Sequence record: ON568341.1
Length of the DNA stretch: 64,000 bases
Strand: one strand, 5' to 3'
Below the pieces are notes generated by a model, which was not told the origin of the DNA, ran no database searches, and saw only the letters and a list, made by a program, of their open reading frames with translations. A program made the translations under genes and the position numbers. Positions 2,152 to 52,095 of the stretch are shown here, in pieces (position 1 is the first letter of the stretch; every line of letters starts with the position of its first letter).

Positions 2152-3849
<1,698 letters not shown>

Positions 3850-3889: not shown

Positions 3890-4041
3890 GTTACAATATT
3901 TATGAAATAGATTAAAAATTTGAAATGTGTTCAAAAATATTATAATAAATTTATAAAAAAAAATAAATGATTTTTTTTGAAACGGTTCAAAAAAATGTGG
4001 TATAATATATATGTTGTTCACGGAAAGATTAAGCGGGGATG

Positions 4042-11776: not shown

Positions 11777-12931
11777 TTATTCGTTATAGCCAACAATAAC
11801 TACTGAGCAGTCAAGTGGTTCACCAACTTTTACAATTACGTTATCATCTTCATCAACTTGTAAATCACTATGAATTACCTGTTTATCAGAAGAATACAAT
11901 TGAACTTGTGGAAGTGCTTTACCATGTTCAGTTGCAGGAATGGATAGAGAATACATTGAGTCTTCATCATGTTTCCAATCACTTAACGCATATTCCTTGT
12001 GGAACGGTGTAGTATGTAGAGTTTTACCCATAATACGTAAAGATATAGGAGAATTATCAGTTTGTTGTACTGTAATATTACCTTTATCATCAACTGACAT
12101 ATCAACGCCTATTTGATGGGAATCCCCATTATATGTTTGGAGAACCAATTTATGTCCACGTTTATGAACATCATATGGTACTACAGCAGAGAATGCACCA
12201 TCAGGTGATGGTTGAAAATCTGACAAGTGAACAGGTGTAACAAAATCTACATCTTCACCATGTTCCTGAACATCAAACTCAACAACTTTAGTATTATAAT
12301 ATGGAGAAGTTAGGGTAGCAGTACCTTTTCCTTTTTGTGTAATTGCATCAACTTGGATTGTAAATGTATCACCAGCAAATTGAGTAGTAGTGTATTCTGT
12401 TCCTTCAGGTAAAACAATTTTGATTTCCATTGAATTGGTATCAATTTCGGAACCAGCATTGAATAACTTACCACTAATTGATTTGTCACCAACAAATACA
12501 GGTGAAATAATAATATTATCTATATCACGATCAATAATACTACATTCAGGTGTGTACATATTGTAAAGAGTTTTTGAACTTCCTAATATTGTTTTATGTA
12601 ATAGGAATTTATATACAAAGCCAGTATCAGCCTCTTGATGGTCATCCGAATGTCCACGAACAAAGAAACTATTTTTATTAATTTCACTTAATAGTTCGTC
12701 AGTTGATTTACTATAATTTAATAGATAACCTTTATTATCTTTTGTTGTTAATTGGACTTTACGATAGATTATATTAGTTCTAGGATCAACTAAATCATAT
12801 AATTTATGACTTCTCTGACGATAGATTCTAATATTTTTTAGTTTAGATCCGTCATTAAGAATCGCACCATCAACGATATAACCACATTCACCAAACTTAT
12901 ATCTTCCAGCCGCTGCAATTGATCTTGACAT
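11777..12931 (-). CDS. putative late/virion protein with repeated beta-rich C-terminal domains
   Basis: SD GGAGG, TAAATA at 12963-12968 on minus strand; two similar internal units (H..G...VQ.Y.......I..D..VD...N..V). Confidence 0.7.
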   Translation of the reverse strand: MSRSIAAAGRYKFGECGYIVDGAILNDGSKLKNIRIYRQRSHKLYDLVDPRTNIIYRKVQLTTKDNKGYLLNYSKSTDELLSEINKNSFFVRGHSDDHQEADTGFVYKFLLHKTILGSSKTLYNMYTPECSIIDRDIDNIIISPVFVGDKSISGKLFNAGSEIDTNSMEIKIVLPEGTEYTTTQFAGDTFTIQVDAITQKGKGTATLTSPYYNTKVVEFDVQEHGEDVDFVTPVHLSDFQPSPDGAFSAVVPYDVHKRGHKLVLQTYNGDSHQIGVDMSVDDKGNITVQQTDNSPISLRIMGKTLHTTPFHKEYALSDWKHDEDSMYSLSIPATEHGKALPQVQLYSSDKQVIHSDLQVDEDDNVIVKVGEPLDCSVVIVGYNE

Positions 12932-13047
12932 TTATTCCTCCATTGATATAATTATTATAGCGTATTTATTAGGTATATCAAAAAAGTGCTTGACTGGTGC
13001 ATAACAAAGTGCTACTATATAGTGAATGAATAAATGAGGCGTTTTTT

Positions 13048-15292: not shown

Positions 15293-15712
15293 ATGTTCAC
15301 ACTAAGTAATACAAAATATCTTTTTCTTATTAGTATTATTGGTTGGGTTATGGCTCCAGTGCTAAATGCACTGGGGTTTTCAGATGAACACAAACTTGTC
15401 ATCGTTTCAGGCGTAATTCAGGGTATTTCATGGTATACATTGATTATATTTTCAGTGTGTATCAATACCTTTGCCCGTGATTATCGACGTTTTTTATATC
15501 TGAAAGTATTCGGTACTACGCGATACAGTTTTGTTTATACTTTTATTTTAGTACCGTGCATGTTATATGCATTTGTATTTGATTACTATACATACCTATG
15601 GGTATGTGGAACTATGTTTGTCATGTTAGAATACATCAGAACAGTACAAAACTCATATGCTGACGAGTATTATGATTTAGAAGTTAAACGACAATTAACG
15701 GAGATAAACTAA
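15293..15712 (+). CDS. hypothetical membrane protein (about 4 TM)
   Basis: Four hydrophobic stretches. Confidence 0.8.
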   Translation: MFTLSNTKYLFLISIIGWVMAPVLNALGFSDEHKLVIVSGVIQGISWYTLIIFSVCINTFARDYRRFLYLKVFGTTRYSFVYTFILVPCMLYAFVFDYYTYLWVCGTMFVMLEYIRTVQNSYADEYYDLEVKRQLTEIN

Positions 15713-40747: not shown

Positions 40748-40788
40748 TAAAAATCCAGTACTGAATAGTACTGGACTAATAAGGAGTT

Positions 40789-41439
40789 ATGATGAAATCA
40801 AAATTAGGTTTGTTTTATGGAAACTACTTCATTAAACAGCGTAAATTCATAAAAAAATACTTCTCTACAGAGAAATCTAGTCCTCTAATTTTTAAAAGAC
40901 CAAAATATAATTTTTACTTAGCTGGTGCTAAACAGTCTAAGAAATTCATTACATTTTTAAATAAAAACAAAATTAAAGCTTCTTATGTTGAAACCAGAAA
41001 GAACTCATCAATAATTCCTGGTGATTTTATTGAATACGGATGTTTCAATATTAAGCACAATGATAACACATACTTTATGGATATTGATTGTAATACATCA
41101 AATCTTTTTAACATTGTAATAAATCCATCAAAACAATATAATGTTTATGGTGATTCAATTATCAAATTAATAAGAAACAAAGATTGGTTTGATTTTGAAA
41201 TAAATGTTTTAGATGAAAACTTTGATGAAGTTCCAGTTAATCCTGAAATATGTGATATATTAAACAGTTTAAAAGGTAGTAGCTACAATATACCATCTGA
41301 TTTAATGTTCCAGTACTCATTAATCCATAAAGATATTGAACAGTACATTATGTGTGCTAAAATCTTGAATTATCTGTATGATGAATTTAAAATGAGTTCT
41401 AAAATAACAGCATATACTCTTTATAATATTTCTATATAA
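40789..41439 (+). CDS. hypothetical protein, EExxFQxS-motif family with basic N-terminus
   Basis: IPSDLMFQYSLIHK; SD AAGGAG. Confidence 0.8.
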   Translation: MMKSKLGLFYGNYFIKQRKFIKKYFSTEKSSPLIFKRPKYNFYLAGAKQSKKFITFLNKNKIKASYVETRKNSSIIPGDFIEYGCFNIKHNDNTYFMDIDCNTSNLFNIVINPSKQYNVYGDSIIKLIRNKDWFDFEINVLDENFDEVPVNPEICDILNSLKGSSYNIPSDLMFQYSLIHKDIEQYIMCAKILNYLYDEFKMSSKITAYTLYNISI

Positions 41440-41480
41440 TTTAAAATATTAAAGCCAGCACAAGAGCACTGGCTTTAATA

Positions 41481-42626
41481 TTATTTTTTCCAAGGAAGTA
41501 ACGAAGTTGGAATCTTGATAGGTATATTTGATGCAGCAACATCAGGAAAATTTGCATCTCCACAAACATACAAATTATCGATTTCGTCAATCAATAATGT
41601 ATAGTTGTAACTTCTACAAAAACCGCTTAAGCCTCTTCCCTCTAATGCAGATAAATTCATTTCAGTGAATTGAGTTATATATGTTTCATTTGAACCAACA
41701 CCACATTGACCATTAGCATTTATACCACAAGTAAGCAATTTATTATTGTTTTGAATTACACATGATGGTCCAGCAAGGTTCGTACCTAGTTCACCTACAA
41801 CATTAACTTCACCTTTTAATGATAAATTTTGGATCACTGTACTCATAGGGACACGCGATGTATTTCCAACACCTGCTTGTCCTGAGCCATTAGTGGATGC
41901 AACTTTAACAGTACCGTCATTAAGAAAAATATAAGATGTTTCGATGGTATTAACTGCTTGTGTAGCTGTTGTTATTGTCGTATCCTGCTTGAATTTAAGT
42001 ACATTTGTTGTTGTTGAACCAGATATAAATGTAGCACCTGCGTACCAATAGGTTCCATCTTGAAGTACTAAACCAGTACTTCTAATTGAACACCCTGCAC
42101 TGCGAACATTTTCTATATGACTATATGTAAAGGTTGATACGATTGAAGATTCACCATTACCGAACACCCCACCAGTACCTGCACCACAGAAAAACCATTT
42201 ACCGTTTTTCAAAAATACACGCATACAAGCAGAAATAACCACACTATCAATATCACTTGCAGCTACACCAAAATCGGTAAAGAAATGAGTTATATCAATC
42301 CAATTACCACCAGTATTTGATGGGAGATGGGGAATTACAACTCTAGTCCCTGTGTACCAGATTGTATCATCATCTTTAATAACAAGAGTACCTTGAACAC
42401 CACCCCAATACCTTGTTACATTTGTATTAACAAGCCTCCACTCAGTAGATGATTCAGTGGAGCCATTACCACCTTGACCATAAGATGATGAGCCGTGCCA
42501 GTATAAATTTCCATTTTTATCTAAATAAAATTTTGCATCAGCCGAACATTGCAATCTGTATTTGAATACGGTTTTTGGTGCTGGTGCAATATTTGCATAT
42601 TTTAGCATTCTACCAAAAGGTAACAT
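41481..42626 (-). CDS. MLPF-array protein 9, RCC1/BLIP-II-like beta-propeller
   Basis: MLPFGRMLKYAN; repeats HGSSSYGQGGNG, GINANGQCGVG. Confidence 0.8.
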   Translation of the reverse strand: MLPFGRMLKYANIAPAPKTVFKYRLQCSADAKFYLDKNGNLYWHGSSSYGQGGNGSTESSTEWRLVNTNVTRYWGGVQGTLVIKDDDTIWYTGTRVVIPHLPSNTGGNWIDITHFFTDFGVAASDIDSVVISACMRVFLKNGKWFFCGAGTGGVFGNGESSIVSTFTYSHIENVRSAGCSIRSTGLVLQDGTYWYAGATFISGSTTTNVLKFKQDTTITTATQAVNTIETSYIFLNDGTVKVASTNGSGQAGVGNTSRVPMSTVIQNLSLKGEVNVVGELGTNLAGPSCVIQNNNKLLTCGINANGQCGVGSNETYITQFTEMNLSALEGRGLSGFCRSYNYTLLIDEIDNLYVCGDANFPDVAASNIPIKIPTSLLPWKK

Positions 42627-42704
42627 AATTTTTCTCCTTCATTCATTATACTGTATTTAATCCAATTAAGAAAAGCTAGTATCAAGTACTGGCATTTAAA
42701 AGAA

Positions 42705-43880
42705 TCAAATTGTCGGAAGTGGGAATTCTTTCATCACCGATGAACTGTTTGCTGCAATATTATCAGGAGATTTACCAGCGTAGTATAATTTATTATTAAT
42801 AAACATATATAGCGTTGCATCGTTCCCTGCTACAAGAGAATTACTTTTCTTAAAAATAACCCCTGGGGGTAAAATAGCTTCAACAAATGAACCTGATTCT
42901 CGTGTTGAATTGTTTGCCAATTGACCATTATTATTATAACCAGTACTATAAATTTTACCTGAACTATAATACACAAGACCACGTGTACTAATGTTTTCTA
43001 TACGAATGAATTCACTATCGTCCGGTACTGTAGTTGATAGAACTGGGTATAACTTATAAGCTGATGTTACATTATTATTACCCAATTGACCATAACCTTG
43101 AAAGCCTAGTGCATACATAGGACATGATTCTGGTGTACCTTTTGTTATAATACCAATATAATTCGAACTACAAAAAATATCCACTGCTTCTACAACATTT
43201 GTACCCTTATATTGAACCCAAGGAAATACATATGATTGTTGTTTGCCATTACCCAAAACACCGGAAGTTGTTGTACCTGTACGCCACATTGTATCATCAA
43301 GTTTAATAATCCAGTTAGCAGTTGTTATAGTTGAACAGAATTTTTTAACATTATCAACCAAGTATGTAAATTTATTATAATATGATGCAGTGTTTATTCC
43401 AAATTTAGCACCAGTATTGTCACCTAACAAATATAAACTATTATCTGTACCTAAAATCAAAACATAATCATGACCCACGTATATCTTTTTGATTTTTGAA
43501 ATACCAAATTGTGTAAAATAGCTGGTACATTCAGTGAATATTGTTACATGATTTGATGTATTATTACCTAGCCATTTATCTAAACCACTATAAAAGAACC
43601 TATCATCATTTGTGCGTATTAGACAAAAAGAATTATTTGTACTGCACCAGAAATCTTTGACATTACTATATATTTTTGTCCATTCAGTTACTTGATTAGT
43701 ATGACCTAAACCAAAAATTCCACCATTTTGTAGTCCCATAGCCCATATTGAACCATTTTTATCAAGAAGCATTGTGCATGTAAATGAATACCCACACGCT
43801 GGAGTAACTAATTTAACAAAATTGGGAATATATGGTAAAACTTTATTCCCATAATTCACCATTCTTCCAAAAGGTAACAT
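42705..43880 (-). CDS. MLPF-array protein 8, RCC1-like
   Basis: MLPFGRMVNYGN; GFQGYGQLG, GYNNNGQLA. Confidence 0.8.
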   Translation of the reverse strand: MLPFGRMVNYGNKVLPYIPNFVKLVTPACGYSFTCTMLLDKNGSIWAMGLQNGGIFGLGHTNQVTEWTKIYSNVKDFWCSTNNSFCLIRTNDDRFFYSGLDKWLGNNTSNHVTIFTECTSYFTQFGISKIKKIYVGHDYVLILGTDNSLYLLGDNTGAKFGINTASYYNKFTYLVDNVKKFCSTITTANWIIKLDDTMWRTGTTTSGVLGNGKQQSYVFPWVQYKGTNVVEAVDIFCSSNYIGIITKGTPESCPMYALGFQGYGQLGNNNVTSAYKLYPVLSTTVPDDSEFIRIENISTRGLVYYSSGKIYSTGYNNNGQLANNSTRESGSFVEAILPPGVIFKKSNSLVAGNDATLYMFINNKLYYAGKSPDNIAANSSSVMKEFPLPTI

Positions 43881-43953
43881 ATTCTCTCCTTATTCATTAT
43901 AATATATATTTAATACAAATAATAATGCCAGTACTCAAATACTGGCATTATTA

Positions 43954-45144
43954 TTACAATTGTCTAGGTGTATCCAGAACATATCTATTTGTGCTAGGAC
44001 CGCCATCATCATAAGTTCCGGTTGAATATATATTTTTCATATCAGCAGTTAGAAATGTACGATACGAACCTCTATATATTTTTATTTTATCATACATATT
44101 ATATGTAATTTGTGCTGGCATTGGACATATAGTAAATCTTCCAATAGTCCCCACTGAACCTACCCCCAATGAGCCAGCATAACTACTCGCATTTAAACCA
44201 GTTGCATATACACCAGAACTCGTAACTAGTATACTAGATTGTGATGGGTATCCAGTATGAATTGAATACAAAGTTCCAGGTGGTAATGTCGTACTATTTC
44301 TCCCTAATACAGCAAGTGCCGAACTGGATGTGGTATTATTACCCCATGCACCATTACTTGCTAAACCACCAACTAGGAACTGACGTACACCCGTACTTGG
44401 ATTTTCCACCAAAGCACTGACTGAACCCATTGAGCATCCAGTGTATTGTAACGTTTTTGTGTATGTTGTACTTGGCTGATATAAAGTATATTCATTATAT
44501 AAAGTCCATGTAGTACTGGAACTTATACCGGATGTACCACCACCAATATATAAATTATTTTGTTTATCAAACAACATTACACAGTTATTTGTTGACATTA
44601 TTTGTGCAATATCAACATTAGGTGTTACTGCTTTTACAAATGAACCATCTGTTATTTGTTGAGTTTTTCCAGTACCATCAGCGAATTGTCTAGCCCCACT
44701 CCAACCAGTACTCCATATTGTATTATTATCCATTAAGAAAGTAAACCACGTAGTACCTGCATACATCTGTTTAATTGAAGTACTTGAACTTTGTTTGTAC
44801 AAATTTTCAATATATTGGTTATAACTTAAAAATGATGTAGTACTGGTTGGTAAACCAATATGACTACCAAATCCACAATAGAAATAATTTAAGTCATTAT
44901 CTTGAACTAACAAAGTTCCTTGTGTGATCCAGCAATCATTAACGTTTTCTCTAATTAATGTCCATGTTCTTAATGCAGTGTTGTTTCCTCTCCCAAACTG
45001 CCCAAAACTATTATTACCTCGTGCATATAGTTGACCATCAGTATAAAGTACAACAACATCAGTATCGGTTGTTAGTATTTTCTTAATTTGAAGTGGGATA
45101 GGTACAATATTCCCGTACTTAACCATTCTTGCAAAAGGTAACAT
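43954..45144 (-). CDS. MLPF-array protein 7, RCC1-like
   Basis: MLPFARMVKYGN; LYARGNNSFGQFGRG. Confidence 0.8.
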   Translation of the reverse strand: MLPFARMVKYGNIVPIPLQIKKILTTDTDVVVLYTDGQLYARGNNSFGQFGRGNNTALRTWTLIRENVNDCWITQGTLLVQDNDLNYFYCGFGSHIGLPTSTTSFLSYNQYIENLYKQSSSTSIKQMYAGTTWFTFLMDNNTIWSTGWSGARQFADGTGKTQQITDGSFVKAVTPNVDIAQIMSTNNCVMLFDKQNNLYIGGGTSGISSSTTWTLYNEYTLYQPSTTYTKTLQYTGCSMGSVSALVENPSTGVRQFLVGGLASNGAWGNNTTSSSALAVLGRNSTTLPPGTLYSIHTGYPSQSSILVTSSGVYATGLNASSYAGSLGVGSVGTIGRFTICPMPAQITYNMYDKIKIYRGSYRTFLTADMKNIYSTGTYDDGGPSTNRYVLDTPRQL

Positions 45145-45215
45145 ATTTTCCTCCTTTATTCATTATACTATATTTAATCAAAAAGAAAAGCCAGTATCAA
45201 GTACTGGCCTATATT

Positions 45216-45953
45216 TTAGACTGAATTGTTAGGATAATATCTCCCCCTTCCCCATATTATTCGCACAGCACCACCACCAGCAGCCGTATAAGAAGAATTA
45301 TCCCATATACTACCACCACCACCATACCTCTTACCAGCACCACCACTACCAGCACCACCATTATATGAACCACCGTAGCTACCACCAATACCATTAGCAC
45401 CTTGAACAATGATACCAGTACCACCACCCGTACCAATGAACGAGGTACTATAGAATGTACCACCCCCACCGCCGCCACCAGCACCATTTTCACCAGTGAT
45501 TGCATCTCCGTTACCACCTTTACCAGTGTAGCCACCAGCACCACCACCAATGACTGCACCACCACTTACACCAGTGTTGCCACCATTACCACCACCATCA
45601 TTAATAGCGTTAGCAGCTTTTCCACCTAGTCCACCAACCGTATATGCACCAGTGAAGCTAACACATAGTTTTTCAGTTCCACGATATAAACCGTTTTCAA
45701 CTGCTGTAGTAGTGTTGGGATGTGTAAGAGAAACACTTAAGTACTCACCACCAGAAACCGGAATATTATTACGCCACGATAAGCCGCCACCAGCACCACG
45801 TTGACCACCCGGCGAAATAACACATACTGATATTTCGGTAACGCCAGCAGGAACTGTAAATTGTGTTGTTCCTATTGTCGTGATTAATTGTTCACCATGT
45901 GGCTTATATTCAATTTTATTCCCGAACTTAACCATTCTTCCAAAAGGTAACAT
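45216..45953 (-). CDS. MLPF-array protein 6, glycine-rich tail-fibre-like domain instead of propeller
   Basis: MLPFGRMVKFGN then FTVPAGVTEISV..GAGGG and AGGGAVRIIW. Confidence 0.8.
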   Translation of the reverse strand: MLPFGRMVKFGNKIEYKPHGEQLITTIGTTQFTVPAGVTEISVCVISPGGQRGAGGGLSWRNNIPVSGGEYLSVSLTHPNTTTAVENGLYRGTEKLCVSFTGAYTVGGLGGKAANAINDGGGNGGNTGVSGGAVIGGGAGGYTGKGGNGDAITGENGAGGGGGGGTFYSTSFIGTGGGTGIIVQGANGIGGSYGGSYNGGAGSGGAGKRYGGGGSIWDNSSYTAAGGGAVRIIWGRGRYYPNNSV

Positions 45954-46024
45954 AATTCCCTCCTTTATTTGTTATACTATATTTAATACAAAAAGAAAAG
46001 CCAGTACTCAGTACTGGCATAATG

Positions 46025-47167
46025 TCAATAAGTATCCCAAGGTAATGGTGTCTTCCTAAATCCATACCTGGTTGTGCTCGCACCATCACCAGCAATGTAT
46101 CTACCTATACCACATTGGTATAACTCTGTACTACTACATATAGCACCACCTATAGTACCACTACTCCACTGAATTATATTAGAATATGTTATTGGTAAAT
46201 CACTACATTTAGTATATACAGCAACGGTAGAAGCACCACTAATACCACCAAACATACTTCGCTTAGCACCAGTGTAATATATACCATCTGGACTCATAAA
46301 TGCAGAGGTGTAAGTTGTACTGCAATCCACTGGACTTCTTATTGTATTAAGATCGCCTGGATATGTTCTGACACCAAAGGTGTATACATTACCATCAGTT
46401 GTAATACCATTACCTAACTGCCCACTGTTTTGTCCACCACATGTAAGCAACGATGCAGAACCAGAAACAATTGCAGTAGCATTATACGAAGTGCCCATTG
46501 CAATAGAAGCACCAGACAATAGTTTTGGAGTAACAATAGCTGTTGTATTACCCTGGCCTAATTCACCATTTGTGTTTCGTCCCCATGCGTATATGGAAGT
46601 AGTATCCAACCTACATAGTACTGAACCATAACTAAACGTATATCGCATGTCAATTACCGCAGAAGGCAAATTAACCTTAGTTGCAACACTAATAACACCA
46701 CCAGTAACACCACTGTTTGCGTTCATGTTACGACCATATGCATATAAAGAACCATCTGAAGTTTTAATATGCATCATACCATCTGTACAATATAATGCAT
46801 CTATACTCTCCACCGCAACCGGACCCATACTGGTAGTTATATCGGTCCACCCAAGAGTAGTAGTACTAGAAATTAAGTTATTTCCTGCGTATAGTATTCT
46901 ATTATTATTAGTAACTACAACTGTATATCTGGCAGTAACACCAATTAATCGAACATCAGTATATATCTTAGACCACGCACCTAATGAATTGGTGTTTGCA
47001 TCCAAAAAGCCCAACTGCCCATCTGTATTGTATCCAATGCCCCATACATCACCTGCACTGTCCAATAACACTTCATGTGAAAATCCAATCTTAAAATCTT
47101 TTATTGTAGGAACTACCGGATCTGGTGCAATATTCCCGTACTTAACCATTCTAGTAAAAGGTAACAT
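46025..47167 (-). CDS. MLPF-array protein 5, RCC1-like
   Basis: MLPFTRMVKYGN; WGIGYNTDGQLG, WGRNTNGELGQG. Confidence 0.82.
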   Translation of the reverse strand: MLPFTRMVKYGNIAPDPVVPTIKDFKIGFSHEVLLDSAGDVWGIGYNTDGQLGFLDANTNSLGAWSKIYTDVRLIGVTARYTVVVTNNNRILYAGNNLISSTTTLGWTDITTSMGPVAVESIDALYCTDGMMHIKTSDGSLYAYGRNMNANSGVTGGVISVATKVNLPSAVIDMRYTFSYGSVLCRLDTTSIYAWGRNTNGELGQGNTTAIVTPKLLSGASIAMGTSYNATAIVSGSASLLTCGGQNSGQLGNGITTDGNVYTFGVRTYPGDLNTIRSPVDCSTTYTSAFMSPDGIYYTGAKRSMFGGISGASTVAVYTKCSDLPITYSNIIQWSSGTIGGAICSSTELYQCGIGRYIAGDGASTTRYGFRKTPLPWDTY

Positions 47168-47240
47168 AATTCCCTCCCTTATTCATTATAATATATTTAA
47201 TACAAAAAAGAAAAGCCAGTACTTGAGTACTGGCATTATG

Positions 47241-48350
47241 TTATTTTGGTAAATCAATTTTAGTAAAGACTGCAACATCCTCGCTTGCCCCAGGAATGGC
47301 GTAATACGATCCAGTACTATATACATCTCCGTCTTTGGTTAATATTGATGTTAAACCATCACTAAAAAGAACATCCCTAATCTCACTAACTTCAACGGGT
47401 AATTGTAAATTAGTAGCACTATATATTGCACCAGTTTGAGAATTGTTTAATCCCAAACCACGGTTCGCCCCAACACCCTTCTGATATGTACTAGTAATTA
47501 TCATTTGTGTAGCAGTATTTAAGGCAGGTGAATTCGTCATAAACAACGGAGAACTATTAGGCAAAGTACTTGCAGGAACTGCACGAAATGAAGTTGTATC
47601 TGAACTAAGAAAGTTTGGCGTTTGACCACATACGAAATATGATGTACCATTATAGTAATTAAATGCATTACCACCAATGACTGCATCGATTACACCAGAG
47701 CTACGTAATCCCCACGTGTTAATTTGTGTTCGGTTCCCCGTGCCATGCTGACCCCTGTCATTCCACCCAGAACTATATAACTTATTATCTAATGTAATAT
47801 ACATACTGTCATTTGCATTCGTCATTACTTTACGCACATTAGTAGCACATTGAGTTAATGTGTAAATTGATGATGAACCAATACCTAAAGCACCACGATA
47901 TCCATTAGCTCCTGCACCATAGAGTACTGAACTAGTGCTAAGTACAAATATTAAACCATACGAACATACAATATTAGCAATTTCACTCACTGGTATAGCA
48001 CTGGTAAACCAATTAGTTCTTTCAACTAATACTGTGCTGTAAGAAGTAGTTGTAGACGATGTGAACCAATATGTTTCCCCTGATGTCCATATAGTATTAT
48101 CATTTTTAATAATAACAAGTGCACGATCACCTACGAAAAAATTAGAAACATCTGCACTTACTAATATCCATGAAGATACCGTGTTTTTATTACCATTTCC
48201 AGATTCACCACCTTGATTTCTACCTATGTAATATAAATCATGTGAATCAGTTAATAAGAATTGACCCTGTGTAGATGCACCAACTTTAATTATATTTTTA
48301 GGACCAGGTACAATATTCCCATAATCAAACATTCTTACAAAAGGTAACAT
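47241..48350 (-). CDS. MLPF-array protein 4, RCC1-like
   Basis: True start MLPFVRMFDYGN at 48350; GWNDRGQHGTG. Confidence 0.8.
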   Translation of the reverse strand: MLPFVRMFDYGNIVPGPKNIIKVGASTQGQFLLTDSHDLYYIGRNQGGESGNGNKNTVSSWILVSADVSNFFVGDRALVIIKNDNTIWTSGETYWFTSSTTTSYSTVLVERTNWFTSAIPVSEIANIVCSYGLIFVLSTSSVLYGAGANGYRGALGIGSSSIYTLTQCATNVRKVMTNANDSMYITLDNKLYSSGWNDRGQHGTGNRTQINTWGLRSSGVIDAVIGGNAFNYYNGTSYFVCGQTPNFLSSDTTSFRAVPASTLPNSSPLFMTNSPALNTATQMIITSTYQKGVGANRGLGLNNSQTGAIYSATNLQLPVEVSEIRDVLFSDGLTSILTKDGDVYSTGSYYAIPGASEDVAVFTKIDLPK

Positions 48351-48425
48351 AACTAAAATCTCCATATAATAATTATAATGTATTTACAAAAAAATACCAG
48401 CACATATTTCAGTACTGGTATAATG

Positions 48426-49607
48426 TTATGGTAAAATAATAGCTTGTAACGAACTCATACCCAATGTTGGAACACTCGCCTGTGGTGCTGGAGAATTCAA
48501 TTTTGGTGATGAAACCGCATATGACATTCCTGAACCCAAATCTGGATCAAAAACTACAGCACAATAATTCCCACTATATATAAGTCCATTCTTGTATCCT
48601 TGTGCACTTTGAATGCATTTCGTGAACGTACCAATATCTGTAGTGGCATTTATTAAGTTCCTCCCACGATAACCGCAGGTGTATATGAAATTATCATCGC
48701 CTATGTACATACTAGAATCCCCAGAAGAACTACATAGATACGACATATAAGCACGCATGTTTTTAGGAGCAACTGACAATGTACCTGCATAGAATTTATT
48801 ATTCGAACCCGTAATATTACCATCACCCAATGCACCAAAACTTCCCCAGCCAGTACCGTAATATCTCTTATCACTCAAAAATATAATACAGTTGTTATTA
48901 CACATCTTGATTTGATATATCAATGAAGGATCAATCCCAGGGAATGATTCAGTGAATGTTAGAACAGCCGGATCAGTACTAGCATTACATTGATGATATG
49001 TATTAGTACCAGCGGACAAGATTGTTCCATTAGCTAACAGAATTCTCGCAGTACCAGTACCAGCAGTACAAGCAACTGCACTTCCTGCACTTCCGGTGTA
49101 TATTTGTCTGAAAGTAAAGAAACCAACAGTTTTACTTCCCTGCCCACTCCAACCAGTATTATCAACTCCACACGCCCATACTGAACCATCTTGCATGATC
49201 ATCATTACACCAAAGCGTTCTATTGAAATATAAACAATCTTCGTTGTATCAACTGCACTAAATCTAGAAGTTATATCAGTCCATACCTTAACACTTACCG
49301 CCGTCGCACTGGAAGTAGGATCTTCACCAGCTATCATTATCCTCCCATTGTTAGTAAGATACATTGTCTGACTATAACCAGTACTACAAAACTTAACACT
49401 ATCAGTCTCTGGAACTTTTAACCACTCGTTGTAACGTGTTACGTTAGTGTTATTACCTAACTGATAATAGTTATTCATCCCAGATACATATAACACACCA
49501 TCCTTTATTAAACTATAAGTCGCACTATAGTCACTACAGGTATAACGTGTACCCACAGGTGGCTCAACGACGTTCCCGTACTTAACCATTCTCCCAAAAG
49601 GTAACAT
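48426..49607 (-). CDS. MLPF-array protein 3, RCC1-like
   Basis: MLPFGRMVKYGN; SGMNNYYQLG. Confidence 0.8.
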   Translation of the reverse strand: MLPFGRMVKYGNVVEPPVGTRYTCSDYSATYSLIKDGVLYVSGMNNYYQLGNNTNVTRYNEWLKVPETDSVKFCSTGYSQTMYLTNNGRIMIAGEDPTSSATAVSVKVWTDITSRFSAVDTTKIVYISIERFGVMMIMQDGSVWACGVDNTGWSGQGSKTVGFFTFRQIYTGSAGSAVACTAGTGTARILLANGTILSAGTNTYHQCNASTDPAVLTFTESFPGIDPSLIYQIKMCNNNCIIFLSDKRYYGTGWGSFGALGDGNITGSNNKFYAGTLSVAPKNMRAYMSYLCSSSGDSSMYIGDDNFIYTCGYRGRNLINATTDIGTFTKCIQSAQGYKNGLIYSGNYCAVVFDPDLGSGMSYAVSSPKLNSPAPQASVPTLGMSSLQAIILP

Positions 49608-49680
49608 AATAAAATCTCCGTAATTAAATTATATAGTATTTACAAAAAATACCAGTACATATTTCAGTACTGACCTATTA

Positions 49681-50802
49681 TTAAAAGGGCAACGGTAACT
49701 CAGTAAAAGTACTTACGTCCGGTAAACCATACATTAAATTAGCATCACCACAGTAATACCACTTCGTAGAATCATGTACCACCGATAAACGCTGTGCACA
49801 TAACACTTCCTGTATGTCATTAAACACCATCGGGACTAACTCATATGTATCTGCAAATGAAGATTCACTACCACTCGCATGAAAAGTATTTGTCCCAGCA
49901 TAAAATAACTGATTAGTGTTCTTACCCACAGCAAATGTTATCAAAACCCCATCATTCTCCCATAAAGAAGAAAACTTATCAACACTACCAGAAAGCTCTG
50001 TGTAAGTACTCGTAATGGCACTCGCCGCCGCCGCATTACCCATCTGTTTATTCAAGTTCTGTCCAGCAATAAAATATCTCGTTCGTGCACTAGAATCAGT
50101 ATATAATAACCCAGTGTTCGTAGTCATCATTCCAATGTCCTTAATCGTCATATCAGTCTGTGAATAACTTAGATACGAAGTTAAATTAACATTATTACCC
50201 AACGAACCGTTAGAACTCATGCCACAACGATGTAATATACCACTTGTATCAACGTAGATAGTACTAACTAAACTCGTATACAACTCTTGTACATTATTCG
50301 CAATAAACACAGCAGTCGCCTTATTACTAACCCCACCAAATGATAGGTTATTATCAAATCCCTTAGCGTATAATTGATTATTAGTAGTCAATAATCCAAT
50401 CGTGTAATAAGACATTTTCATATCCCTTACTGTACTCAAATCTACTGCCCCAAATTGATACGTAACATCTGTCCATTTGAAAATCTGTGCACTACCAACA
50501 CCACCCGTTTCAAACCATTTGTCACCACAGTACAATATGCGATTATCCTTAGTAAAGATAACTGTTAACAATCCACTACCACACGCAAACTTTACATCAC
50601 TTCTAACCTTCGTCCAATCAAGTACATAGGTAGTGGTGTTATTACCTATACCTAACTTGCCATAACGGTTATAACCACGCACCCATAAATCACCACTCTT
50701 AGTAATTAATAGTAATGCGTCTCCTGTACTTATTATTCGAAATCCCGAACTAGGATCAGGGGCAATATTCCCGTACTTAACCATTCTCCCAAAAGGTAAC
50801 AT
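49681..50802 (-). CDS. MLPF-array protein 2, RCC1-like
   Basis: MLPFGRMVKYGN; WVRGYNRYGKLGIG. Confidence 0.8.
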   Translation of the reverse strand: MLPFGRMVKYGNIAPDPSSGFRIISTGDALLLITKSGDLWVRGYNRYGKLGIGNNTTTYVLDWTKVRSDVKFACGSGLLTVIFTKDNRILYCGDKWFETGGVGSAQIFKWTDVTYQFGAVDLSTVRDMKMSYYTIGLLTTNNQLYAKGFDNNLSFGGVSNKATAVFIANNVQELYTSLVSTIYVDTSGILHRCGMSSNGSLGNNVNLTSYLSYSQTDMTIKDIGMMTTNTGLLYTDSSARTRYFIAGQNLNKQMGNAAAASAITSTYTELSGSVDKFSSLWENDGVLITFAVGKNTNQLFYAGTNTFHASGSESSFADTYELVPMVFNDIQEVLCAQRLSVVHDSTKWYYCGDANLMYGLPDVSTFTELPLPF

Positions 50803-50875
50803 ATTTTCCTCCTTTATTCATTATACTATATTTAATACAAAAAGAAATGCCAGTATCAAGTACTGGCATATTAAT

Positions 50876-52024
50876 TCATTGTATAAATGACATATCTACT
50901 TCTGTATAATTAAGAACGTTCTGTCCAGAAATACCACCCATTACTACTATTGCAAGGCCACAATAATATAATTTTCCAGTATCCGTAAGTATAAGTGATC
51001 CAGATGGACTGCGTACCAAATCACACGAACTATTAAAAGAAGTATAAGAAGGAGTATAGGAGTACTGATTATTATTATTACCAACACCTAATTGCCCAAA
51101 CCCATTCGATCCAGAAGCATATAGAACTTCATCTGCTTTGACAATATGTGATGCCATGTTACCAACACAAGTATATAGAGTATAAACTCCTGAACTCAAT
51201 AATGTCGGAGTTTTATATTGTATATCTGTAGATGTAGAAGTACCACCTGTACCAAATTCGTTCCCATATTGTGCACCGAACTGTTTGCCACAAGCGTACA
51301 AATTATTATCCGATTTGATAAAAAATGTACTCTGATAACTTACATTAAAATCTATAACATCCGAAGAAATCATCGTCACCCCAGTAATAGAAGTTTGATT
51401 ACCCGTGCCCAACTGGTAGTAATAGTTAAAACCACAACCCCATAAAGTATTATCTTCTCGCAAATAAATGTTACCAACTGCCTTTTTAACCGAAGTTATA
51501 GTATCTACTCTTTTGAATGTGTTAAAAGAATTAATGTTTGTACCATCACCAAATGATGATATGTTCGATATATTGTTAACTCCACAACAATACAATGTAC
51601 CATCTTTTGTTATCAAATTCACCTTCATATCATAAAAACTACTCATGTATTTTATATCAGAAACATTAACACCACTTGATGTTATCCACGTAGTACAGTC
51701 CGTCCACAAAGTTTTTCTATCAGTTACACCAGTGAATGCCTTCGTGTTACCAGTGATAAAAACTTTTCCAGTACCTTTCTCTTCATACAATTGACAATCA
51801 CTACTGTTATCTTCCAATAGAACTCGTTTAACATTCTCCGCACAAAGAATAAATTTACTCGATGCTACACCTGTACCAGTACCCCAATTCGTCGCAGAAG
51901 ATGCATACAACTTATCAGTATAAGTATCATGAAGATACATAGAATCACTGGAATATATTTTAAAACGCCCTTCTTTCTCAGGTATAATATTCCCGTACTT
52001 AACCATTCTCCCAAAAGGTAACAT
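50876..52024 (-). CDS. MLPF-array protein 1, RCC1-like
   Basis: MLPFGRMVKYGN; WGCGFNYYYQLGTG, SGSNGFGQLGVG. Confidence 0.82.
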   Translation of the reverse strand: MLPFGRMVKYGNIIPEKEGRFKIYSSDSMYLHDTYTDKLYASSATNWGTGTGVASSKFILCAENVKRVLLEDNSSDCQLYEEKGTGKVFITGNTKAFTGVTDRKTLWTDCTTWITSSGVNVSDIKYMSSFYDMKVNLITKDGTLYCCGVNNISNISSFGDGTNINSFNTFKRVDTITSVKKAVGNIYLREDNTLWGCGFNYYYQLGTGNQTSITGVTMISSDVIDFNVSYQSTFFIKSDNNLYACGKQFGAQYGNEFGTGGTSTSTDIQYKTPTLLSSGVYTLYTCVGNMASHIVKADEVLYASGSNGFGQLGVGNNNNQYSYTPSYTSFNSSCDLVRSPSGSLILTDTGKLYYCGLAIVVMGGISGQNVLNYTEVDMSFIQ

Positions 52025-52066
52025 ATTCCCTCCTTATTCATTATATCATATTTACCCAAAAAACAC

Positions 52067-52095
52067 TTGACACCCTTTCAGTACTGTTGTACAAT
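52067..52095 (+). promoter_or_regulatory. sigma70-like promoter with CAGTACTG box for small-gene array
   Basis: TTGACA-17-TACAAT. Confidence 0.75.

Follow-up and report, generated by a model that had tools for sequence, protein, structure and literature searches.

T4 internal proteins, the products of a hyperplastic locus, share a constant N-terminal capsid-targeting peptide of ~10 residues that precedes unrelated cargo; the prohead protease cuts this signal, and the cargo resides within the head. KP32-type secondary receptor-binding proteins, found in Klebsiella phages KP32, K11, and KP34 and in E. coli phage K1-5, possess a 29-residue constant N-terminal docking peptide (PMC13352976). PeSL cassettes of T4-type phages, each composed of a terminator stem-loop and a promoter, flank nonessential genes of hyperplastic regions and supply homology for shuffling (PMC2839356, PMC4122927). 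Each of these systems has a counterpart in some feature of an array of nine genes in Escherichia phage UE-S1 (genus Asteriusvirus), which we describe here. The window that we analyzed, a stretch of 64,000 nt from record ON568341.1 (100% identity; window coordinate + 62000 = record coordinate), contains nine minus-strand open reading frames (ORFs) that fill positions 41481-52024, and every one of them opens with a 12-residue N-terminal tag. We posit, with a probability of about 0.6, that the tag is a virion-docking peptide retained on shuffled ligand-binding modules.

As in the KP32-type proteins, a short constant peptide stands before interchangeable and unrelated domains, independently of their fold, and stays on the mature protein; in KP32-type phages, this peptide is needed for incorporation. 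The two systems nevertheless differ in most particulars. A KP32-type phage has a single carrier, a trimeric depolymerase whose partner is a T4gp10-like branching domain, whereas UE-S1-type phages have 9-15 carriers per genome, a tag of just 12 residues, and propeller, lectin-like, or glycine-rich bodies, with no partner identified; the two peptides have no sequence similarity. The T4 signal resembles the tag in being a constant N-terminal peptide on unrelated virion-packaged proteins, but it is removed, whereas tag-internal peptides survive in virions and the body folds suggest surface binding. Like PeSL cassettes, the intergenic elements of the UE-S1 array contain stem-loop terminators (strong in six of eight) and are sites of shuffling. 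PeSL cassettes, however, contain strong early promoters of the sigma-70-like type and lie beside unrelated ORFans, while the UE-S1 cassettes lack a -35 element and have a late-motif-like core. Furthermore, the UE-S1 repeat, unlike PeSL, includes the first 36 nt of the coding sequence, and an exchanged gene thereby always keeps the same tag.

Arrays of RCC1-like genes, annotated as encoding "DNA condensation proteins," have been reported in phages 121Q, PBECO4, phAPEC6, and GAP32, with their multiplicity noted and some members present in virion mass spectrometry (MS) data (PMC7247149 and PMC5259590). In the searchable literature, as far as its texts are accessible, we found no mention of the shared tag, of its occurrence on virion proteins other than the RCC1-like ones, of the cassettes, or of their part in module junctions, and a literature search for the MLPF string combined with phage terms returned nothing relevant. 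The accessible part of the fEgEco12 paper states that two of the array proteins differ from those of phage Ecwhy_1, and nothing else on them was found there; the Sharanji paper and a 2026 jumbo-phage review, in their accessible parts, hold almost nothing on the array genes or promoters. New here, within the reach of these searches, are the tag, its spread over several folds, and the junction made of cassette and tag, whereas the arrays and the detection of their products in virions had already been published.

A constant tag on divergent proteins

Seven residues of the tag (M1, L2, P3, F4, R6, M7, and N12) are invariant in all nine proteins, and the other five vary (position 5, G6/A1/T1/V1; position 8, V7/F1/L1; position 9, K7/D1/N1; position 10, Y8/F1; position 11, G8/A1). 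Mean pairwise identity is 84% over residues 1-12 and 29% over residues 13-18, and pairwise identity among the eight propeller bodies is no higher than 22-29%. At the DNA level, the 21-nt pattern ATGTTACCTTTTNNNAGAATG, which spans codons 1-7, has nine matches in the window, all at starts of array genes and at no other site, where 0.01 would be expected by chance. The arrangement is real and nonrandom and bears out a preliminary description, made from the sequence alone, that recognized nine genes sharing a 12-residue N-terminal tag. The position of the tag also corrects two annotated start codons: the true start of gene 4 (UES1_209) is at 48350, whereas the GenBank record and the ORF list begin at 48365, five codons early; that of gene 5 (UES1_208) is at 47167, whereas the GenBank start, 47149, is six codons late.

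The spread of the tag was surveyed by scanning IMG/VR with a degenerate back-translated tag pattern, for which ~1e-4 chance matches are expected per genome. Of the 34 stretches returned, 27 belong to contigs 348-378 kb long or to a fragment of such a contig, and the other seven are at chance level. Contigs of 348-378 kb contain 2-11 tagged genes each, and their set includes 121Q, CBB, GAP32, and Serratia phage BF. Applied to bacterial and archaeal genomes (596 Gb), the same degenerate pattern revealed no tagged arrays; the 119 single matches there, against ~78 expected, are at chance level only, and a cellular occurrence of the tag was rejected. As judged by this pattern, the tag is restricted to the RaK2-like jumbo phage clade. 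Within it, Salmonella phage Munch has ~15 tagged genes with the consensus M-I-P-F-x-R-[I/M]-x-x-Y-[G/A]-N, most of which overlap the preceding gene and lack a cassette.

Comparison among genera separates two layers of conservation. Munch, CBB, and four metagenomic relatives preserve the residues of the tag while its codons vary; the tag is therefore under protein-level selection across the clade. Many tagged genes in these phages are translationally coupled and have no cassette, and the tag is also found on solitary genes such as CBB_144 and CBB_247. By these comparisons, the tag predates the Asteriusvirus array and is more widespread. The idea that each gene is a self-contained expression unit therefore applies to the Asteriusvirus array but does not extend to other genera, and self-contained units would be an Asteriusvirus elaboration, since most tagged genes elsewhere are without cassettes.

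In Asteriusvirus, the tag codons are almost frozen, rare ones included (GGG in 8/8, compared with a 10% background), while codon 5 varies; in this genus, the DNA of the tag is held uniform in addition to the protein. Such uniformity of nonpreferred codons, together with homology blocks that stop just past the tag (see below), would be expected if the constant 5′ end served as DNA or RNA (for recombination, for the initiation of translation, or as an mRNA leader) and the peptide were a mere passenger. We regard this as very improbable because other genera keep the residues while synonymous sites vary, because the tag persists on coupled genes that have no cassette and on solitary genes such as the two of CBB, because its presence predicts presence in the virion, and because the same bodies are headed by a different and equally constant peptide in their Seunavirus relatives.

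One resemblance outside the clade was noted. In phage contigs of 20-72 kb, a 352-residue major head protein (phrog_264) opens with MLPFTPLDGYGN (L012 8262-9320, and also L020, L022, and L015). It was considered as a further tagged family and rejected, and the resemblance is treated as chance.

Tagged proteins in virions

Published virion proteomes connect the tag with the phage particle. MS of phAPEC6 virions (PMC7247149) identified eight "DNA condensation" proteins (gp003, 005, 006, 007, 009, 010, 549, and 551), and all eight carry the tag; they make up 8 of the 11 RCC1-like proteins counted in that paper, among 62 of 551 proteins detected (hypergeometric P 2e-6). In CBB, we found eleven tagged genes (CBB_144, 247, 536, 537, and 548-554), and nine of their products belong to the set of 55 proteins detected in virions out of 554 ORFs (PMC5259590, Table 4; hypergeometric P 2e-8). 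Six CBB structural proteins were listed by the authors as absent from GAP32, and all six are tagged. CBB_144, a tagged homolog of gene 6 of the UE-S1 array, is a virion protein by MS, and GAP32 gp001 is both tagged and reported in virions. Far from being absent from virions, tagged proteins are thus components of the particles of all three phages, as the preliminary description had proposed.

The fate of the tag itself is evident from the CBB virion peptide report, which includes the tag-internal tryptic peptides LFEYANVIIPPNYK, YANVIVEYATK, and LLQYGNK, derived from the tags of CBB_536, 548, and 553. Because these peptides come from mature virions, the tag is not a cleaved propeptide, and residues 7 onward at least survive.

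Two observations on the records may be added. The CBB_144 gene (L008 7001-7765) stands alone between the genes for an anaerobic ribonucleotide reductase and its activase, far from the structural clusters. In the phAPEC6 record, several tagged ORFs are unannotated or shortened (L003 2360-3506 and 5992-7716) and may for this reason be missing from the MS database.

Bodies carried by the tag

The Pfam families RCC1 (PF00415) or RCC1_2 (PF13540) score above the gathering threshold in six of the eight propellers of the array. The products of 41481-42626 and 49681-50802 fall under the RCC1 threshold but match WD40_RLD (RLD PF25390) with E values of 2e-14 and 1e-16, respectively. Three propellers that were scanned against PHROG, including that of 41481-42626, match phrog_4219 at E 9e-94 to 1e-111. 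A PDB sequence search with a propeller returned UVR8, HERC2, and RCC1, with UVR8 and HERC2, not RCC1 itself, as the best matches. The AlphaFold2 model of the gene 5 product has a mean predicted local distance difference test (pLDDT) score of 90.5 and a predicted template modeling (pTM) score of 0.88; it is all-β, with ~28 strands, and superimposes on viral RCC1-like models with template modeling (TM) scores of 0.73-0.91. By this model and the PDB sequence matches, the RCC1-like bodies have a seven-bladed β-propeller fold.

The body of gene 6 is of another kind. A Pfam scan gave no match at E 0.1 or better, while phrog_4474 matches at E 9e-66; the Munch homolog passes the threshold for PF21722, Gly_rich_2 (25.6 versus 24.3 bits), and many other homologs carry PF21722. 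The AlphaFold2 model of gene 6 (pLDDT 92.9) resembles glycine-rich domain proteins with TM scores of 0.68-0.74; it also matches proteins named baseplate component, tail fiber, or minor tail protein, and a Foldseek search with it gave weak matches to the cyanophage Pam3 fiber, the Bxb1 tail tip, and the glycine-rich domains of ALK/LTK. PDB sequence searches with the glycine-rich protein alone, with a 76-sequence profile, and with two tagged CBB bodies found nothing meaningful. A polyglycine sandwich like that of the T-even tail-fiber adhesin was considered for gene 6 and was not confirmed, given the lack of a PDB sequence match and the weakness of the Foldseek matches. Altogether, the Pfam, PHROG, and PDB sequence matches agree with the earlier division of the array into eight divergent RCC1-type bodies and one unrelated glycine-rich body.

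The range of bodies is wider still across the clade. Most of the 88 tagged ORFs that we collected encode propellers, and the remainder fall into ~10 families, among them Kelch, an RCC1+Kelch fusion, ConA-like (Laminin_G_3) proteins including phrog_6011, Gly_rich_2, and phrog_6409. By these family assignments, five or more kinds of body bear the tag: an RCC1 propeller, a Kelch propeller, a ConA-like lectin domain, a glycine-rich domain, and phrog_6409. Related domains occur in other phages in parts that face outward: RCC1-like propellers are found within tail-fiber proteins of Pseudomonas phages PollyC and Littlefix, and the ConA-like bodies have matches in the C-terminal regions of giant virion proteins and baseplate proteins.

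RCC1-type propellers are often ring-closed by an N-terminal strand, and the tag might therefore be no more than the closing "velcro" strand of the propeller. The AlphaFold2 models of genes 5 and 6 led us to reject this reading, the least probable of those considered. Residues 1-9 of the tag have pLDDT <50 in both models, with intermediate values over the ten residues that follow; in the gene 5 model, the first propeller strand is at residue 22, and the propeller is nonetheless modeled with the pTM given above. The tag is also present on nonpropeller folds and is just as disordered in the glycine-rich model. In the models, then, the tag is separable from the body fold and disordered on both folds.

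A further reading is the database annotation, according to which these would be DNA or chromosome condensation proteins that organize the packaged genome. The proteins owe this name to their homology with eukaryotic RCC1, and the authors of the phAPEC6 study proposed a DNA-ordering role (PMC7247149). However, the homology is one of propeller fold, a general protein-binding scaffold whose best PDB matches here are UVR8 and HERC2; the tagged proteins are near neutral in charge (net -3 to +6); the same tag and locus also hold lectin-like, Kelch, and glycine-rich bodies; and CBB packages a similar genome without an RCC1 homolog. We find the annotation highly implausible, even more so than a passenger peptide.

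Homologs of the same bodies in Seunavirus open with a different peptide, as MEEMLL, MIEMLL, or MFEMML. Those with phrog_6011 bodies are 4MG_167 (L046 2450-3100) and an unannotated SPLA5a ORF located between tRNA genes (L047 2456-3094), that with a glycine-rich body is PVP-SE1 gp19 (L009 6998-7840), and many metagenomic glycine-rich homologs start in the same style. Shared bodies behind a lineage-specific head peptide are what one would expect of an adaptor matched to a lineage-specific partner, and the Seunavirus peptide may be a second, independent address system.

Exchange at the junction of cassette and tag

The array has relatives in 37 records from E. coli and Salmonella jumbo phages. We compared four arrays (UE-S1, fEgEco12, 121Q, and phAPEC6) and located the boundaries of homology blocks between UE-S1 and both fEgEco12 and 121Q. 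The blocks mostly start 1-9 nt past the upstream stop codon, although two internal ones begin farther into the spacer (+33 and +74), and with a single exception they end 35-55 nt inside the next gene; adjacent blocks thus overlap on the cassette and the tag. Gene order is permuted, with 380 / Gly-rich / 396 in UE-S1 (sizes in residues) versus 380 / 396 / Gly-rich in fEgEco12. These boundaries and permutations substantiate the proposal that the conserved cassette and tag permit swapping by recombination.

Array content differs between genomes as well. A comparison across isolates, suggested along with that proposal, distinguished 19 body types at 60% identity in the four genomes, six of them common to all. 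Gene 2 has an ortholog in fEgEco12 (97% identity) and none in 121Q or phAPEC6, gene 3 has one in fEgEco12 only, and no ortholog of gene 8 with >35% identity was found in the other three arrays. The number of copies of cassette plus tag ranges from 5 to 17 per genome in 36 Asteriusvirus-like records. The 121Q array (L036) includes a tagged gene truncated to 68 residues, whose body is 391 residues long in phAPEC6; it was counted as a broken copy.

A proposed docking model and the probable location on the virion

We posit that the first 12 residues would act as a virion-incorporation, or docking, peptide that is kept on the mature protein and joined to the folded body by a flexible stretch of ~8 residues. 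The bodies would be interchangeable β-rich modules that bind ligands, and a single type of acceptor site, for which all tagged proteins compete, would give rise to a mixed set on each virion. The acceptor site would most likely be external, on the capsid or the tail, with the bodies contacting structures of the host surface. In Asteriusvirus, each module sits between a predicted terminator and a promoter-like element, and the ~110-nt repeat of cassette and tag codons would provide the homology for gain, loss, and reordering of modules. We infer from the comparisons described above and below that the tag docks, what the acceptor is and where it lies, that the bodies bind ligands, and that expression is late. 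The earlier proposal of a modular display system, in which the tag docks variable domains on the virion, is largely on the right track and partly supported: the presence of tagged proteins in virions and the exchange junction of cassette and tag, two of its three inferences, are backed by the data, while docking by the tag itself and the outward display of the bodies stay conjectural; the tag also proved to be wider than proposed, being clade-wide and present on several folds.

Where the acceptor is located is the point on which the evidence divides. The tag could be a T4-type capsid-targeting signal, with the proteins inside the head, perhaps in the inner body of phAPEC6, and ejected with the DNA as a variable injected arsenal, for example of inhibitors of host defense enzymes. 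The T4 prohead protease prefers (L/I)-x-E sites, and the jumbo phages considered here encode a prohead core protease of the T4 type as well as a scaffold. The T4 internal proteins offer a precedent for a short constant N-terminal peptide on unrelated bodies from a hypervariable locus, the tagged proteins are in virions, and hypervariability between close relatives fits an arms race equally well. Tag-internal peptides, however, were recovered from mature CBB virions, one of them across an L-x-E site, whereas the T4 signal is removed, and no conserved acidic residue is present at the end of the tag. The near-neutral charge of the tagged proteins is unlike that of DNA-binding core proteins, lectin-like and propeller folds sit at the distal ends of fiber or baseplate proteins in other phages, and propellers of 40 kDa would presumably need to unfold in order to exit through the tail. 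The phAPEC6 authors proposed that RCC1-like proteins form the inner body, but the MS coverage is low for a body of many megadaltons (PMC7247149). Thus, the T4 analogy, the protease and scaffold, and the inner body point inside, while the propellers in tail-fiber proteins, the glycine-rich and ConA-like matches, the neutral charge, and the retained tag point outside. We consider an internal arsenal unlikely and favor the surface model over the internal one by roughly two to one.

Several points weigh against surface docking. The same data are almost equally compatible with a site inside the particle. MS reports association with purified particles, not position or stoichiometry; its coverage in phAPEC6 is low (3-17%), and two tagged CBB proteins, CBB_550 and CBB_554, were not detected in virions. 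Tag residues 1-6 were never seen as a CBB peptide; this fragment is probably too short to detect, which makes its nondetection uninformative. The TM scores of the glycine-rich model to solved fiber structures are weak (0.2-0.3). No acceptor was identified, and a Pfam scan of two phAPEC6 baseplate-region proteins of 3323 and 1153 residues returned nothing. Finally, promoter class and terminator efficiency are predicted from sequence for every Asteriusvirus.

A link between the tagged proteins and hairs is neither favored nor contradicted by the phages compared: CBB is hairy but lacks an RCC1 homolog, and GAP32 has tagged proteins but no hairs reported in the literature examined. A more ambitious version of the docking model, which we put forward tentatively and do not expect to hold in full, is that one clade-wide acceptor reads the 12-residue address and assembles 9-15 modules into a mixed, possibly stochastic set, perhaps at hairs, while recombination reshuffles the repertoire between phages. 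In an alternative that would be equally novel and has the same evidence behind it, the address would serve to load binding proteins destined for injection.

The docking model has several consequences. In place of the misleading label "DNA condensation protein" or "regulator of chromosome condensation," it offers a testable account of the tagged proteins, which make up 13-16% of those detected in virions of two jumbo phages. Structural proteins treated as unrelated, such as the six CBB-specific ones, all of which are tagged, are now tied together. Used as a plain sequence rule, the tag predicts virion proteins and allows start codons to be corrected throughout the clade, and it narrows the search for the makeup of hairs, capsid fibers, or the inner body. 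It also points to a mode of module exchange in which a regulatory cassette extends into the coding sequence, so that the exchanged gene comes with its address. If a shared acceptor exists, these phages would have a natural combinatorial display and population-level variety in the targets of virion adhesion.

Cassettes and expression of the array

The eight internal spacers of the UE-S1 array (71-78 nt) have a common layout: a hairpin, a T-run, TAAATA, a short spacer, a TATAAT-like hexamer, and a Shine-Dalgarno sequence (Table 1). Hairpins with a T-run are strong in six of eight (-12 to -21 kcal/mol), weak in one (49640-49683), and degenerate in another (42660-42707). TAAATA, the TATAAT-like hexamer, and the Shine-Dalgarno sequence are present upstream of all nine genes, and the gap between the two hexamers is 3 nt in 8/9. 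A -35 hexamer at 16-18 nt was not found in the array cassettes, and Rfam contains no known RNA family that matches the array region or the cassettes. The cassette of ~70 bp per gene that the preliminary description outlined, made of a terminator, TAAATA, and a Shine-Dalgarno sequence, therefore survives as a promoter motif in 9/9, while its terminator part is decayed at gene 1 and weak or degenerate at two other genes.

The promoter motif resembles that of structural genes. ATAAATA precedes structural genes of CBB and GAP32; the authors of the CBB study compared it with the T4 late promoter, and these phages encode a gp55-like sigma factor (PMC5259590). In phAPEC6, (T)ATAAATA is found upstream of the genes for capsid, scaffold, and baseplate. 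In the array cassettes, TAAATA is preceded by T or G and is followed by TATAAT, so that the TAAATA core is shared with the structural-gene motif. Because of this common core, late expression of the array is likely. The promoter region of gene 1 opposes a sigma-70-like promoter (52067-52095) of plus-strand small genes, and the GC skew reverses over the array, as fits a minus-strand island among these genes.

Table 1. Positions of the array genes, their cassettes, and other features with related motifs in the window
Feature	Position	Strand	Description
Gene 1	50876..52024	-	382 aa; tag MLPFGRMVKYGN and RCC1-like propeller; 98% identical to phAPEC6 gp549 (virion MS protein)
Gene 2	49681..50802	-	373 aa; tag and RCC1-like propeller; WD40_RLD E 1e-16, RCC1_2 under gathering score
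Gene 3	48426..49607	-	393 aa; tag and RCC1-like propeller
Gene 4	47241..48350	-	369 aa; tag MLPFVRMFDYGN and RCC1-like propeller
Gene 5	46025..47167	-	380 aa; tag and RCC1-like propeller; 83% identical to phAPEC6 gp005 (virion MS protein)
Gene 6	45216..45953	-	245 aa; tag MLPFGRMVKFGN and glycine-rich body, Gly_rich_2 / phrog_4474 family as judged by its homologs
Gene 7	43954..45144	-	396 aa; tag and RCC1-like propeller
Gene 8	42705..43880	-	391 aa; tag and RCC1-like propeller
Gene 9	41481..42626	-	381 aa; tag MLPFGRMLKYAN and RCC1-like propeller; ortholog at position 4 of the 121Q array
Gene 1 upstream region	52025..52075	-	promoter-like TAAATATGATATAAT at 52040-52054; ribosome-binding site; upstream hairpin decayed
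Cassette, genes 1/2	50803..50875	-	predicted hairpin -12 kcal/mol with T-run; TAAATATAGTATAAT at 50820-50834; ribosome-binding site
Cassette, genes 2/3	49608..49680	-	second subtype; weaker hairpin, -8.1 kcal/mol
Cassette, genes 3/4	48351..48425	-	second subtype; hairpin -15.1 kcal/mol
Cassette, genes 4/5	47168..47240	-	hairpin -13.2 kcal/mol
Cassette, genes 5/6	45954..46024	-	hairpin -12.4 kcal/mol
Cassette, genes 6/7	45145..45215	-	hairpin -12.6 kcal/mol
Cassette, genes 7/8	43881..43953	-	17-bp stem, -21.1 kcal/mol; spacer of promoter motif two bases longer
Cassette, genes 8/9	42627..42704	-	hairpin degenerate (-5 kcal/mol, z -0.3); promoter motif intact
Array-closing terminator hairpin	41436..41480	.	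-22.6 kcal/mol, z -8.5; common to the convergent plus-strand gene 40789-41439
Lone gene among plus-strand small genes	11777-12931	-	384 aa; no tag; phrog_10468 "virion structural protein"; TAAATA-N3-TATAAT at 12954-12968
Tail-fiber/hydrolase-like gene	2152-3849	-	565 aa; PHROG matches; composite motif at 3939-3953 with one mismatch

Elsewhere in the window, the composite motif precedes two more minus-strand genes (Table 1). Relatives of the phrog_10468 protein bear a structural annotation in GAP32 and in jumbo phages of Erwinia and Xanthomonas, and the tail-fiber/hydrolase-like gene looks like a third late-type island in a region of early type. Hairpins with the CCAGT...ACTGG stem typical of the array also occur outside it, at 40752-40777 and 15356-15374, and this stem may thus be a general terminator of the phage. 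A plus-strand ORF of 201 residues (46647-47252), antisense within gene 5, is unsupported and probably spurious.

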